From positions 124,001 to 188,000 of the IMG/VR virus record IMGVR_UViG_3300049215_000529: DNA of 64,000 nucleotides. The stretch is one strand, 5' to 3'. Numbering within the stretch: the stretch's first letter is position 1; every line of letters begins with the position of its first letter. The position numbers and the translations under genes are program-made. Below the pieces are notes generated by a model, which saw nothing but the letters and a program-made list of their open reading frames with translations, did not search any database and had not been told where the DNA came from. Below are positions 11,229-61,743 of this stretch, in pieces.

Positions 11229-11307
11229 GAGCGGTCTTTGACTCGAACGTTTCTCGATGATGAAATTCCGAATATCTGGTTCCTGCATGTAAATGCTTCA
11301 TTCGCTC
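11229..11307 (-). ncRNA. Candidate structured RNA motif, copy A
   Basis: GAGCG/CGCTC closing stem; CGAATG, TTACATG, TCATCA blocks shared with 61624..61743. Confidence 0.4.
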
Positions 11308-11373
11308 ATCTTGCGAATGGGATCCATGCCCCGTCTTTCCTTAAAAGAAACGGCATGACAGCGACGACTGCCC

Positions 11374-11452
11374 TGGTACGCCTGGAGGGATTCGAACCCG
11401 CAAAACCTTCGGTTCCGTAGACCGACGCTCTATCCAGTTGAGCTACAGGCGC
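11374..11452 (-). tRNA. tRNA-Arg(ACG)
   Basis: TCGGT-CT ACG GA-ACCGA arm, A20, CCA. Confidence 0.92.
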
Positions 11453-11456
11453 ATAA

Positions 11457-11894
11457 TTACAAACGTATGCCTTTATAGTAGTTGAATTGCTTTGCTGTTT
11501 TCTTTTTGTGACAGTTGGCACACCTTACGTCACATTTTTGAATTTCTTGTTTTATTGTCTCCAAGCTGAGCGTTCGCATCTCGCTCACATTATAAGTCTT
11601 GTCGCTACGATGGTCAAATTCTAAAACTATCGGATCTGTTTCTCCACAATCAATACATGGATTTTCTTTCAAGTAATCAATCATGAACTGCAAATTACTT
11701 ACTCTAATTTTATAATTGCGTTTCTTTGCTTTCGCAAGGTAATAATCTGTACGTAACTCGTAATGTTCTTTGTGAAGAACAGCTATACATTTCTTGCAAC
11801 GATGCTGAAGTCCGTCTTTCGAGCCAGCTCTTTTATTGAAATGATCTTCTAATGGGGTAGGATAATCTGTTTTACACTTCGTACAAATCTTCAT
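11457..11894 (-). CDS. HNH homing endonuclease
   Basis: CIDCG...LEFDH...CANCH. Confidence 0.8.
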   Translation of the reverse strand: MKICTKCKTDYPTPLEDHFNKRAGSKDGLQHRCKKCIAVLHKEHYELRTDYYLAKAKKRNYKIRVSNLQFMIDYLKENPCIDCGETDPIVLEFDHRSDKTYNVSEMRTLSLETIKQEIQKCDVRCANCHKKKTAKQFNYYKGIRL

Positions 11895-11935
11895 ACAAAG
11901 GATACGAAACTATTGATACATTTCGTATCAAATTC

Positions 11936-12021
11936 TGGCACGCCCGCTCGGAGTTGAACCGAGATAAAGAGTTTCGTAGACTCTTACGTAGACTCTTACG
12001 TAGATCCGCTACGACGGGCGT
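11936..12021 (-). pseudogene. Pseudo-tRNA-Arg(ACG) with a 12-bp tandem duplication in the D/anticodon region
   Basis: Intact acceptor stem, T arm, CCA and AAGAGT-CT ACG AA-ACTCTT arm; CGTAGACTCTTA x2 plus a partial third copy. Confidence 0.7.
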
Positions 12022-12024
12022 ATT

Positions 12025-12099
12025 TGGTATCTCTGATTGGACTCGAACCAACATAAAACTGCTTAGAAGGCAGCTGCCTTTCCATTAGACTACAGAGAC
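12025..12099 (-). tRNA. tRNA-Arg(TCT)
   Basis: GCTGC-CT TCT AA-GCAGT arm, CCA. Confidence 0.88.
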
Positions 12100-12116
12100 A
12101 TAAAACAAAACTTACT

Positions 12117-12193
12117 TGGCATGCCCAGAAGGATTTGAACCCTCAACCTATCGGGTAGAAGCCGATCGCTCTGTCCAGTTGAGCTATGAGCAC
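12117..12193 (-). tRNA. tRNA-Arg(TCT), second copy
   Basis: ATCGG-CT TCT AC-CCGAT arm, CCA. Confidence 0.9.
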
Positions 12194-12213
12194 ATAAAGA
12201 AACCAAAGTTTCT

Positions 12214-12288
12214 TGGTGATCCCTACGGGAATCGAACCCGTGTTAACAGATTGAGAATCTGCCGTCCTAGCCGCTAGACGAAGGGACC
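12214..12288 (-). tRNA. tRNA-Glu(CTC)
   Basis: GCAGA-TT CTC AA-TCTGT arm, CCA. Confidence 0.9.
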
Positions 12289-12319
12289 ATCGTATCTATT
12301 ATATCAGCTTATTAGCCGA

Positions 12320-59352: not shown

Positions 59353-59648
59353 TGGCTAACCAAGTCGCCTAACTCTTGAACTGGATCTTTTGGTTGCACG
59401 GTCATGGCAACAAACTTGTTAGCAAGTTCCTTTAATGCCGAAGGAAGATCGCTTCCCTGAGCCTTGCAAACTACCAACTTATCCTTGGCGAATGCACCAG
59501 TATAACGAACCACAGAGCAATAATAGCCCTTCTTGAGAGCAGAGACTGTAACTCCTGGAGACGTCTTGTCGTCGCGAAACCTAAAGCTAACCGCCTTAGT
59601 TAGTTTGTCCATCAATTGATCGGTTGTAACATTCATATTCTTCTTCAT
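59349..59648 (-). CDS. Hypothetical protein
   Basis: ATGA-coupled ORF. Confidence 0.6.
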   Translation of the reverse strand: MKKNMNVTTDQLMDKLTKAVSFRFRDDKTSPGVTVSALKKGYYCSVVRYTGAFAKDKLVVCKAQGSDLPSALKELANKFVAMTVQPKDPVQELGDLVSQ

Positions 59649-59663
59649 AGTATACCTTTATTG

Positions 59664-60521
59664 TTATGCACCAACTTGGCAACGGATAAATCCAACTACT
59701 TGAATGTCTCCGCCCAGTTTGGCGCTCATATTTTTCACGACCTGTTGAACTGAAGTCTTAGGCTGAACCACTGACTCCTGCTCTAACAAACAGACTTCAG
59801 TATGCCACTTCTTGAACTTTCCTTCTAAAATCTTTGCCCAAGCAGCCTGAGGTTTGTTCATTTCCTTCAGTTGCGCTTCAAAGATTCCCCTTTGTCTTTC
59901 AACTACCTCGGCTGGTAAAGAGTCAACAGAAACTGCAACTGAACTCATGGCTGCCACTTGCATTGCTAATTCCTCTCCAAGAGTTTTGAAATCTTCAGTA
60001 TTAGCCGCCTCTACCGAGGGAGCTACCATGGAAAGCAAGACACCAATCTTATTATTGGAGTGTATGTAGTGACACACTCTGCCAGCCTCTGGCATCACTT
60101 GCTCAACCCACCAACGACGAATGACAATGTTCTCTTTAGTTTTAGAGATTAAGTCCTTTCGTGCATTTTCCAAGACGTCGCAATCATGATAGAATGGATT
60201 AGACTGAGCTACATCGGATCCAAGTTGGAAAGATACTAGATCCACAAACTTATTAAAGTCAGGACTATTAGCAACAAAATCAGTCTGGCAATTGACCTCG
60301 ACCATACTCTTGGTTCGATTATCTCCAACATGACCAATGCGAACAATACCTTCCGTAGCAACATTATTGCTGGTGCGGGAGACTACATTAAGACCTTTGA
60401 TCTTTACGATATCCACTGCCTTTTGCAAGTCCCATGCGGCTTCTTCGAGGGCATCTTTGCAGTCCTTCATGCCAGCTTGAGTAAGTGCTCGTAACTCTTT
60501 GATCAGATCAGTGTTGTTCAT
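59664..60521 (-). CDS. tsf: Elongation factor Ts (start MNNTD)
   Basis: IKELR.LT.AGM.DCK.AL, ATEG, EVNCQTDFVA, Y.H...IGV, AMQVAA. Confidence 0.95.
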   Translation of the reverse strand: MNNTDLIKELRALTQAGMKDCKDALEEAAWDLQKAVDIVKIKGLNVVSRTSNNVATEGIVRIGHVGDNRTKSMVEVNCQTDFVANSPDFNKFVDLVSFQLGSDVAQSNPFYHDCDVLENARKDLISKTKENIVIRRWWVEQVMPEAGRVCHYIHSNNKIGVLLSMVAPSVEAANTEDFKTLGEELAMQVAAMSSVAVSVDSLPAEVVERQRGIFEAQLKEMNKPQAAWAKILEGKFKKWHTEVCLLEQESVVQPKTSVQQVVKNMSAKLGGDIQVVGFIRCQVGA

Positions 60522-60537
60522 AGTAATACCTTTGCGC

Positions 60538-60565
60538 AAAGTAAATCTTAAAAATTGTAAGTCAA
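60538..60565 (-). promoter_or_regulatory. sigma70-like promoter TTGACT-N16-TACTTT upstream of tsf
   Basis: 30/32 identical to 3072..3103. Confidence 0.55.
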
Positions 60566-60698
60566 GGGCGGCAAATTTTTAATATAATCCAAATATCTTG
60601 AGCCGCCTCGACTCATATAACGATTCCTGCCTCTTTTTAATTTATAAACTTAATGTGAATAATAGATCATACTGATAATAGAATTAGAGAGGAACAAT

Positions 60699-61439
60699 AT
60701 GCTTATTGCTGTTATTAATCAATCTACAATGGTAAATAATATTGATGTAAATACCATGTGCCAAGCCATTCAAATTCAGCTTAGTCTGCATGTACTACCT
60801 GCTTATAATATGAAGGCAGCTACTGTTACTTTCTATGCCGATAAAACTAAAGTCCCAGGCTATGCTTGGGTAATTAGCGTGCTTGATAACTCTACACAAG
60901 CTGGCGCTCTTGGTTATCACTCCGAAGACAATGATAAGGTTGATGGATACATCTTTGCTCAACCAGTTTTAAGTAATGCTGGGGTGGTATTGTATGATAC
61001 AAACAATCCACAAAATGTCAGCGTTGCTTCTGTATTGAGTCATGAAATTTGTGAAATGGTTGGTGATCGCTTTGCCAATGCATGGGTCGATGGTCCAGCC
61101 ATCGCTCAAGGTAGCGAATATGCTCAAGAATTATGCGATCCAGTAGAAGGCGATTCTTATGCCATTACTGTTAATGGTGCAAAGGTTTCAGTATCTAACT
61201 TCATCTTTCCTTCTTGGTTCAATCCAGAAGCAACGACAGTTAACTTGCCATTTGATTATCTAGGAAAACTCAAAGCACCATTTACCATGACTCCTGGCGG
61301 CTACATGATCGTTCGTCAGTCTGGTACGGTCTCTCAAGTATTTGGTGAAGAGATGCCAGAATGGAAGAGAGAAGTTAAGCGTGCCAAAGCAGCTAAGCGT
61401 CCTTCTAAGACTAGAAAAAAGTTTCTAGGAATATTCTAA
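60699..61439 (+). CDS. Hypothetical zincin-like protein
   Basis: LGYH, SHEICEM, ELCDPVE; GAGG SD. Confidence 0.6.
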   Translation: MLIAVINQSTMVNNIDVNTMCQAIQIQLSLHVLPAYNMKAATVTFYADKTKVPGYAWVISVLDNSTQAGALGYHSEDNDKVDGYIFAQPVLSNAGVVLYDTNNPQNVSVASVLSHEICEMVGDRFANAWVDGPAIAQGSEYAQELCDPVEGDSYAITVNGAKVSVSNFIFPSWFNPEATTVNLPFDYLGKLKAPFTMTPGGYMIVRQSGTVSQVFGEEMPEWKREVKRAKAAKRPSKTRKKFLGIF

Positions 61440-61443
61440 ATAA

Positions 61444-61521
61444 TGGAGCGGGTGATGGGACTCGAACCCATGATGATGTCTGCTTGGAAGGCAGATGCCG
61501 TCGCCACTGAGCCACACCCGC
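61444..61521 (-). tRNA. tRNA-Gly(TCC)
   Basis: TCTGC-CT TCC AA-GCAGA arm, U73, CCA. Confidence 0.9.
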
Positions 61522-61544
61522 ATTTTAACAGCTTTGCACTTACT

Positions 61545-61618
61545 TGGAGCGGTTAACGAGAATCGAACTCGTGTCCCTAGAATGGCAATCTAGGATTCTA
61601 CCATTGGACCATAACCGC
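61545..61618 (-). tRNA. tRNA-Gly(GCC)
   Basis: CTAGA-TT GCC AT-TCTAG arm, CCA. Confidence 0.9.
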
Positions 61619-61623
61619 TTAAT

Positions 61624-61743
61624 AGACGACTAAAATTGATGAGATCTTTTTCCAATCTCTTACGAGAAAGGTTGATGGGTTTGAACCATCTATTCTAAAG
61701 TTTCCCTTAGAAATTTACCATGTAATCACATCAGCATTCGTCT
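61624..61743 (-). ncRNA. Candidate structured RNA motif, copy B, with degenerate tRNA-like insert
   Basis: AGACGA/TCGTCT closing stem; CGAATG, TTACATG, TCATCA blocks; inner GATGG-TTCAAAC-CCATC T-arm-like hairpin. Confidence 0.45.

Follow-up and report, generated by a model that had tools for sequence, protein, structure and literature searches.

Y RNAs are hard to detect by homology, and few phage Y RNAs are known to us: those of mycobacteriophages, phage G, CcrColossus, and phiLo. Ro60/Y RNA tethering to PNPase occurs in Deinococcus, Salmonella, and Thermus phage phiLo. Among the closest described relatives of the RNA reported here is YrlA (RF02553), found in Salmonella, Mycobacterium smegmatis, and mycobacteriophages (Chen et al. 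2014, PMC4201824). Its 5' and 3' ends form a terminal helix, followed by an internal loop (AUGCu opposite AAnnCUUG) and a second helix. A GNCGAAN0-1G motif, proposed to contact Ro60/Rsr, lies near the 5' end, and the YUAY motif follows the second helix (PMC4201824). Further on, a T-arm precedes an acceptor-like stem-loop. The marks of the YrlA type also include physical binding to Ro60/Rsr and modifications of the tRNA type (pseudouridine 55, dihydrouridine). YrlB (RF02565) has the Ro60-binding stem and loop only. The CGAA hallmark was also applied to phage RNAs, and Yrl1 and Yrl2 of phiLo are phage-encoded, carry a CGAA-bearing bulge, and are paired with a phage Ro60 (PMC12135203).

We consider it very likely that a spacer within a phage tRNA array, here called element B, encodes such a Y RNA, that is, a small non-coding partner of Ro60 (Rsr, TROVE domain), and that a stretch in a second array, copy A, is an unrelated sequence. 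Both lie in a window of 64,000 nt, the whole stretch of DNA analyzed (positions 124,001 to 188,000 of IMGVR_UViG_3300049215_000529). The preliminary description had presented them as two copies of one undescribed RNA motif, and its observations on the letters themselves were accurate. On the minus strand, both contain CGAATG (11299-11304 and 61735-61740), TTACATG (11286-11292 and 61719-61725), and TCATCA (11258-11263 and 61637-61642). Terminal stems are present in copy A (GAGCG/CGCTC, 11303-11307 / 11229-11233) and in copy B (AGACGA/TCGTCT, P1 in Table 1), the tRNA-like insert of copy B includes a perfect T-arm, and neither copy is recognized as a tRNA: ARAGORN and Rfam gave no tRNA call over 61619-61744 or 11192-11373.

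Table 1. Features of element B, its flanking tRNA genes, and copy A (window coordinates)
Feature	Position	Strand	Basis
Element B, predicted YrlA-type Y RNA-like transcript unit	61619..61744	-	R1, R2, Rfam YrlA, fold z
Upstream tRNA-Gly(GCC)	61745..61819	-	ARAGORN and Rfam, distances to tRNAs
Downstream tRNA-Gly(GCC)	61545..61618	-	ARAGORN and Rfam, distances to tRNAs
P1 5' strand, AGACGA	61738..61743	-	6/6 P1 pairs compensatory across 25 members
P1 3' strand, UCGUCU	61624..61629	-	Same P1 compensatory evidence, 25 members
GACGAAUG, exact GNCGAAN0-1G match	61735..61742	-	Sequence, motif definition PMC4201824, invariant columns
P2 5' strand	61724..61733	-	Changes on both sides in 8/9 P2 pairs
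P2 3' strand, includes TCATCA block	61637..61646	-	P2 covariation
Internal loop 3' side, AUUUUAG, equivalent to YrlA consensus segment aAaAcUuG	61630..61636	-	cmscan alignments
UUAC (YUAY motif) and conserved joiner ACAUGGnUAA	61713..61725	-	Invariant A1 columns; YUAY per PMC4201824
V hairpin, GAAA tetraloop	61693..61712	-	MFE fold
T-arm, GAUGG / loop UUCAAAC / CCAUC, 5-bp stem	61674..61690	-	4/5 pairs compensatory
Acceptor-like (AS) hairpin, GUAA tetraloop, 3' of T-arm	61652..61671	-	MFE fold
A-rich 5-nt linker between AS and P2; canonical YrlA has D-arm there	61647..61651	-	Structure comparison
Copy A, not a family member; orphan stretch of the 182-nt spacer between tRNA-Arg(ACG) and tRNA-Arg(UCG)	11229..11307	-	Models, fold, homologue searches

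At the structural level, element B folds into a stable RNA (z -3.74; 0/200 shuffles as stable), and its MFE fold is the comparative structure. The paired ends, P1 and P2, flank an internal loop bearing the invariant GAAUGC / UUnGUC. The GAAUGC core (61734-61739) extends 1 nt past the GACGAAUG part, and YGAAUGC is the only portion of the GNCGAAN0-1G region kept across the family. The UUAC occupies 61722-61725, and UACAU (TACAT in DNA) is invariant in alignments A1 and A3. Between the P2 strands lies a cargo of three hairpins: V, the T-arm, and the GNRA-capped acceptor-like stem. The V hairpin is kept in the orthologues despite differing sequence; in MFE folds, its loop is a GNRA tetraloop in the four others with an intact hairpin, a 5-nt CGCAA in L096, and UUU in L047. 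The AS hairpin is GNRA-capped in all seven orthologues.

Element B is one member of a family numbering over 40 elements and has orthologues at the syntenic tRNA-Gly site of related huge-phage contigs. The covariance model R1 scored it at 134 bits, and the independent model R2, built from 12 short elements of other phage contigs, recovered it at 51.8 bits (E 1.4e-12). In the alignment, 95.5% of cells were paired, a percentage somewhat inflated because the alignment was fitted to the model's own structure, and slid controls were 32-54% paired. Compensatory changes were seen in 18/20 pairs, and 0/500 shuffles did as well. What the whole family conserves is the P1-loop-P2 module and not the tRNA-like cargo. 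Members of 60-75 nt have only the Ro60-binding stem and loop, as YrlB does, with no cargo, and short and long forms stand side by side like YrlB and YrlA in Salmonella and M. smegmatis. This mixture of short, D-armless, and canonical forms shows the Ro60-binding stem to be a portable module. Relative genomes carry 2-8 paralogues each, and our own record, over 204 kb, yields a single detectable one. Among phages of 150-480 kb that encode Ro60 as well, the family is common; one Ro60-positive relative (G004) gave no R1, R2, or YrlA match. In Myxococcus phage Mx1, one family member has been annotated as a hypothetical protein of 40 aa.

The preliminary description had named, among the results that would refute it, a match to an Rfam family already known, and such a match exists, below threshold. 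YrlA is the sole non-tRNA Rfam match of element B (21.6 bits, E 0.062, model positions 1-114, gathering score 69), a score that alone proves nothing because control genomes also match the YrlA model. Across the whole record, that model gave weak matches only, of the kind tRNAs give too, and at gathering thresholds Rfam reported tRNAs only within the window. Relatives scored 24-45 bits, from 24 in L016 to 45.3 for the neighboring paralogue in G008, which has the canonical T-AS-D order. Because the family falls below the Rfam threshold, it has stayed unannotated.

Compared part by part, element B shares with YrlA the terminal helix, the GNCGAAN0-1G motif, the internal loop and second helix with the YUAY after it, and the T-arm followed by the acceptor-like stem-loop. 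Bacterial YrlA and YrlB have the same P1-loop-P2 module, so the blocks taken for an undescribed kind of RNA are the Ro60-binding module of YrlA/YrlB-type Y RNAs, and the family is linked to Ro60 genes, as YrlA is, with phage-encoded examples known. The cargo resembles the YrlA tRNA-like domain minus the D-arm. Unlike YrlA, element B has no P3 helix and no D-arm. The D-arm, which is among the two best-conserved hairpins of YrlA, is missing from the orthologues of element B as well, whereas the G008 paralogue has a canonical one. Instead, element B has an A-rich linker at the D-arm/P3 place and, ahead of the T-arm, a GNRA-capped hairpin. It is also part of a tRNA array and directly adjoins tRNAs, and its orthologues are 36-46 kb from Ro60, whereas bacterial YrlA is typically within 4 kb. 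Against YrlB, element B is a long form, and the only YrlB Rfam match in the family reached 18.4 bits (gathering score 97). The phiLo RNAs, compared here by description, differ in lying directly upstream of the Ro60 gene, with no tRNA-array context described. With tRNA (RF00005), element B has in common a T-arm with UUCRAnn loop, an acceptor-like helix, and the tRNA-array location with its strand and processing context; yet it has no cloverleaf, anticodon loop, or D-arm, and the tRNA models recognized no cloverleaf with anticodon arm.

The link to Ro60 comes from the genomes of relatives. Of 20 family-positive phage records, 11 have Ro60-like ORFs (528-597 aa), among them all six that are at least 58% complete, vs. 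0/17 family-negative controls, a co-occurrence whose Fisher p of 2e-4 is only indicative because the records are related. The Ro60 ORF of relative G005 matched the solved Ro60 structures 9KOP and 2NVO (E 1e-17), with E 6e-17 against the phiLo Ro60 structure 9KOP. Family members in relatives lie on the Ro60 strand, 0.4-8 kb from Ro60, and the element B orthologues are on the same strand with Ro60 36-46 kb upstream. In bacteria, R2 matched five loci among 80 pattern hits, and all five lie between Ro60 and RtcB genes; the Ro60 genes there have vWA_Ro60, plus TROVE in four of five. These intergenic RNAs with the P1-loop-P2 module are outside tRNA arrays.

Searches for TROVE and RtcB in our 204-kb record found none, and the Ro60 gene is absent from a near-identical 130-kb twin record. 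The TROVE negative carries no information, since by synteny the Ro60 locus lies beyond the contig end. In five relatives (G005, G039, G040, G041, and G042), a marker gene has the Ro60 gene 22-29 kb upstream; in our record, this marker is 1.7 kb from the end, which would place the Ro60 gene of this phage some 24 kb beyond the contig. With no Ro60 gene in the record or its twin, the partner is assigned from synteny only.

The evidence for element B does not extend to copy A. The notion of two copies of one undescribed motif, one per tRNA array, draws on three short blocks in the same order, a pairing terminal stem in each copy, and a place on the transcribed strand of tRNA arrays. However, the chain of colinear exact words of at least 6 bases was matched in 107/2000 dinucleotide shuffles, a p of ~0.05 before allowing for the dozen spacers open to comparison, so the resemblance is not above chance. 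With filters off, copy A gave no match to R1 and at most 0.1 bits with R2 on its strand, and it shows no fold signal (z -0.30; 69/200 shuffles fold as well); in the MFE fold of the full spacer, its CGAAUG pairs with an upstream CAUUCG. It has no invariant UUGUC, P2 cannot form in register, and its first two blocks are spaced 3 nt too short for the family. No homologue was found beyond a near-identical genome: blastn of the 182-nt spacer against all fetched loci returned itself and copies in that genome, and when viral contigs were scanned for an A-specific pattern, there were 10 matches, nine in coding DNA without tRNAs and one in the near-identical genome. In relative G003, the syntenic spacer holds an HNH endonuclease ORF. 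We therefore rejected copy A as a family member, on model score, fold, and homologues alike, and with element B being of a known kind, the two-copy reading is extremely improbable. It is also unlikely that copy A is what remains of a short Y RNA paralogue after decay into a pseudogene; such paralogues are common in the tRNA arrays of relatives. The blocks of copy A coincide with GAAUG, UUACAU, and UCAUCA, the three most conserved of the family, with the expected order and strand and within a tRNA array, and one detectable member in 204 kb is few beside the 2-8 paralogues of relatives; against this, its model score is zero, the block spacing, the 3' UUGUC, and P2 fail as above, relatives show no intermediate forms at the site, and the resemblance is within chance. 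The earlier proposal of a functional structured RNA thus holds for copy B, with its conserved blocks, compensatory stem, homologues, and covariation, and not for copy A.

Element B could also be a tRNA-derived spacer element acting independently of Ro60. It might then serve to process or insulate the tRNA polycistron, or as a decoy for host nucleases that target tRNAs or enzymes that bind them. Being butt-joined to tRNAs, with a T-arm and an acceptor-like hairpin, would suit such a role, as would the lack of a Ro60 gene in the available record. We regard it as highly unlikely, since the conserved part is P1-loop-P2 rather than the cargo, short members have no cargo at all, the same module recurs in the bacterial Ro60-RtcB intergenic RNAs outside tRNA arrays, and family and Ro60 strongly co-occur.

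Turning back to element B as a Y RNA, it takes up the entire 126-nt spacer between two tRNA-Gly genes, and a tRNA lies within 15 nt in 24/31 family members by distance measurement. P1 is 1 nt from the encoded CCA end of the upstream tRNA-Gly(GCC), so tRNA 3' processing would set the 5' end of the RNA, and an RNase P cut at the 5' end of the downstream tRNA-Gly(GCC) would set its 3' end. Four metatranscriptome runs gave contigs over 58200-63900 on the neighboring Kelch gene only, which speaks neither for nor against expression of element B. The tRNA arrays and element B had no match among 50,697 phage records (megablast, blastn). Amber (TAG) recoding, prompted by a tRNA(CUA), was unsupported: TAG readthrough extends ORFs no more than the TGA control.

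From this arrangement, we propose that element B is transcribed within the tRNA-Gly polycistron and would be freed by the enzymes that mature the flanking tRNAs: RNase P would cut on the 3' side of element B, and tRNA 3' processing would act on the 5' side. The freed RNA would then bind the phage Ro60, a ring-shaped RNA-binding protein encoded ~40 kb upstream of the element B orthologue in relatives. It may gate the Ro60 ring or tether Ro60 to another enzyme, as in other Ro60/Y RNA systems, and the decay or repair of structured RNAs would thereby be redirected while the phage infects its host.

Finally, it is possible, if rather doubtful, that huge phages and the cultured Myxococcus phage Mx1 share a modular Y RNA system in their tRNA arrays, in which one Ro60-binding stem carries exchangeable cargo and is cut out by tRNA maturation enzymes. 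The cargo would range from none, through a D-armless T-arm domain as in element B and the canonical T-AS-D, to a whole cloverleaf. Full-text literature searches found no description of Y RNAs in phage tRNA arrays and nothing on Mx1 TROVE. The position of family members directly beside tRNAs implies that RNase P and tRNA 3' processing mature them, which has not been described for Y RNAs. If the modular system is real, tRNAs would be co-produced with a set of Ro60 adaptors, and during infection these would direct RNA decay or repair or oppose host defenses aimed at tRNAs. Mx1 with Myxococcus xanthus offers a culturable system for the function of a phage Ro60/Y RNA particle.

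The spacer between two tRNA-Gly(GCC) genes is taken up over its whole length by element B (window 61619-61744, minus strand). We fetched related contigs via the 246-aa protein adjoining it (52-66% identical in that protein) and found a B orthologue at the equivalent site in all four distinct relatives; pattern scanning supplied a fifth. The orthologues conserve the ends and the central T-arm, and the hairpins between these parts keep their shape while varying in sequence. R1, a covariance model built from the five orthologues, combined with a degenerate pattern search across viral contigs, added at least 19 members in at least 10 further phage records, as well as a second copy in the relative G005. 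When 25 members are aligned, pairing holds for 95.5% of cells (0 of 500 shuffles were as good, and slid controls paired at 32-54%), percentages that lean towards structure because the alignment was fitted to the model. Eighteen of the 20 pairs changed on both sides, and the compensatory changes of helix P1 are plain in the raw sequences too, without model fitting. B folds far more stably than its shuffled versions (z -3.74, matched by 0 of 200). Thus, the proposal of a structured RNA with homologues and covariation was borne out for B, and its family has a conserved, covarying structure.

The preliminary description put this RNA forward as a candidate undescribed motif. At relaxed thresholds, YrlA, a bacterial Y RNA-like family, was the only non-tRNA Rfam family aligned end to end with B. 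The RNA does match a known family, but below threshold (21.6 bits vs. a gathering score of 69), and this score alone is weak evidence because tRNAs also score with the YrlA model. The score derives from the terminal module rather than the tRNA-like middle. The published YrlA motifs GNCGAAN0-1G and YUAY (PMC4201824) are present in B as GACGAAUG and UUAC. A neighbour of family members in contig G008 has the canonical order of T-arm, acceptor-like stem and D-arm, and matches YrlA in a local search (45.3 bits, E 4e-9); in its alignment, the family-invariant GAAUGC and UUGUC are YrlA consensus letters. R2, a covariance model built only from 12 short elements, all in other phages, was run unfiltered over the whole window, and B was its sole significant match (51.8 bits, E 1.4e-12). 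The motifs, R2 and the YrlA-like neighbour indicate that the stem-loop module is homologous to YrlA/YrlB, and B is not a new kind of RNA.

From bacterial genomes, 80 chance-level pattern matches were listed, and among these R2 picked five loci: two in Undibacterium and one each in a Comamonadaceae MAG, a Pseudomonadota MAG and Ponticaulis. All five lie exactly between the genes of RtcB and Ro60 (Rsr), the protein partner of Y RNAs; the Ro60 genes carry Pfam vWA_Ro60 in five of five cases and TROVE also in four. This matches the known arrangement rsr-yrlBA-rtcBA of Salmonella. One Undibacterium gap is filled by tandem R2 matches, seven in number, far above the two Y RNAs described for Salmonella.

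B had also been presented as one of two copies of a motif, the other (copy A; window 11229-11307, minus strand) lying in a second tRNA-array spacer. The sequence blocks and terminal stems described for both spacers are there; the likeness of the spacers is not significant, with an equal ordered chain of exact words of at least 6 bases arising in 107 of 2000 dinucleotide shuffles. Copy A folds no better than its shuffles (z -0.30), gave no match in an R1 scan with filters off, and reached at most 0.1 bits with R2 on its transcribed strand, which argues against a second copy. It lacks the invariant UUGUC, and P2 is unable to form in register. We consider it improbable that copy A is a decayed Y RNA paralogue: the one point in favour, the shared blocks, is at chance level. 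Among the matches listed for an A-specific pattern in viral contigs, only a near-identical genome has tRNA context, and blastn of A's spacer against all fetched sequence returned nothing beyond itself and that genome's copies. In the relative G003, the equivalent spacer, between tRNA-Arg(ACG) and tRNA-Arg(UCG), contains nothing A-like and holds a 149-aa HNH endonuclease ORF. Since this ORF sits exactly in copy A's spacer, array spacers would undergo turnover as homing endonuclease genes are acquired and lost.

Members of the B family are long and cargo-bearing (~95-170 nt) or short, with stem and loop only (60-75 nt). Most sit flush with tRNA genes: a same-strand tRNA lies within 15 nt of 24 of the 31 members examined and within 300 nt of 29. 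In the divergent member of locus L026, P1 and P2 are compensated and the cargo is a whole cloverleaf in normal order (Rfam tRNA, 43 bits; called tRNA-Ile(GAU) by ARAGORN), so that it looks like a tRNA nested within a Y RNA stem. Short, long and canonical YrlA-like forms are intermixed in the run of units in G008.

The family is genomically linked to Ro60 in phages. Of 20 viral records with family members, 11 carry a TROVE/Ro60-like ORF (528-597 aa), among them all six that are at least 58% complete; the 17 family-negative records, which came out of the same pattern scan, have none (Fisher p 2e-4, no more than indicative, since the records are related). Where both are present, the Ro60 gene has family members 0.4-8 kb away on its own strand. 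In G005, the ORF is recognised by the Pfam models vWA_Ro60 (58.8 bits) and TROVE; over nearly its full length it also aligns with two solved Ro60 structures, 9KOP from Thermus phage phiLo and 2NVO from Deinococcus (E ~1e-17). The closest cultured relative of this Ro60 is that of Myxococcus phage Mx1 (WNM70118.1; 51% identity), whose tRNA array contains two unannotated family members, one beneath a 40-aa "hypothetical protein" that is probably a mis-annotation. The most canonical Ro60 was seen in the 327-kb relative G004, in which R1, R2 and YrlA had no match and the syntenic site holds only one tRNA-Gly; any Y RNA that G004 carries would be of another type.

Our own 204-kb record yielded no TROVE gene, since synteny would put the locus past the contig end. 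G005 is colinear with it (37.5-59.7 kb vs. 177-202.5 kb) and has Ro60 25 kb further. A marker gene 1.7 kb from our record's end has counterparts of 63-81% identity in four larger relatives, of which two are 97-100% complete, and Ro60 lies 22-29 kb upstream of it in all four; in the three large relatives with a B orthologue, Ro60 is 40-46 kb upstream of that orthologue on the same strand. Short family members stand between Ro60 and the marker in G005 and all four. From this synteny, we expect the Ro60 gene of this phage ~24 kb beyond the contig end.

The IMG/VR virus record, of which the window spans bases 124001-188000, comes from a huge phage (completeness 47%, CheckV), and its sequence is present in DNA runs from moss metagenomes. 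Its 32 tRNA genes, 19 of them in the window, are all on the minus strand, sorted by amino acid and with CCA encoded; HNH endonucleases lie within the arrays, and neighbouring genes are translation-related (TyrRS, EF-Ts). Some of the cargo is unusual for a phage. Within window 58200-63900, metatranscriptome contigs (moss, plant; 100% identity) cover nothing but the Kelch gene. A partial tRNA match upstream of tRNA-Arg(UCU) may be a tRNA fragment or pseudogene. An amber suppressor tRNA lies in the array immediately upstream of the tRNA-Ser genes. Among the 173 ORFs of at least 150 aa, only 4 have TAG as their stop codon; TAG recoding is not supported, because TAG read-through lengthens ORFs no more than TGA read-through.

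Features of the phage record (G000), its relatives and a bacterial locus
Feature	Location	Strand	Remarks
Element B, first half (5' to 3')	window 61619-61744 (whole element)	minus	P1 6 bp; AUGC; P2 9-10 bp; UUAC and conserved joiner
Element B, cargo			V hairpin (GNRA-capped); T-arm; AS acceptor-like hairpin (GNRA-capped); A-rich linker
Element B, end			P2'; AAnnUUnG; P1'; 4-5-nt tail
Divergent second family member	L026 12167-12298	plus	directly upstream of B orthologue
Run of at least 7 Y RNA-like units	G008 (L097, L206-L210) ~127.1-128.9 kb		by Ro60 gene
Permuted-tmRNA-like match, G008 locus	L097 12381-12838		40 bits, below threshold
R2 matches, Undibacterium sp.	L230 2545-3871	minus	Ro60-RtcB gap
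Mx1 family member	L205 608-713 = OR576727.2 45522-45627		R2 23.5 bits; under CDS WNM70101.1
Mx1 second family member	OR576727.2 45170-45297
Ro60, G004	IMGVR_UViG_3300023213_000432 39363-40472		TROVE 142 bits; 629-aa ORF
Full TyrRS, malate synthase, EF-Ts, Kelch-repeat protein	window 9422-10624, 14482-16053, 59664-60539, 62023-62973
HNH endonuclease ORF in tRNA array	window 13478-13888	minus
HNH endonuclease ORF in tRNA array, relative	L037 1049-1500	minus
Partial tRNA match	window 11947-12001	minus	Rfam tRNA positions 10-63; 26.5 bits vs. gathering score 29
tRNA with anticodon CUA, 92 nt	G000 199329-199420, outside window		ARAGORN label Pyl

At the functional level, B would be co-transcribed with the tRNA-Gly genes and freed through RNase P cleavage and tRNA 3' processing. 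It would bind Ro60 via its GAAUGC-bearing module and may act as a gate or tether for it, in the way known for PNPase from the Ro60 systems of Deinococcus, Salmonella and phiLo (PMC4201824; PMC12135203). In B's cargo, which has no D-arm, the conserved ACAUGG joiner could take over from the D-loop.

Y RNA-like RNAs are already known from mycobacteriophages, phage G, CcrColossus and phiLo (PMC4201824; PMC12135203), and some jumbo phages carry TROVE proteins (PMC7824862, a review). The literature searched contained no description of Y RNAs flush within tRNA arrays, of a Y RNA cargo lacking the D-arm, or of how widely this sub-threshold family occurs among huge phages. Y RNAs embedded in tRNA arrays, D-armless cargo and a wide spread in huge phages are apparently new.
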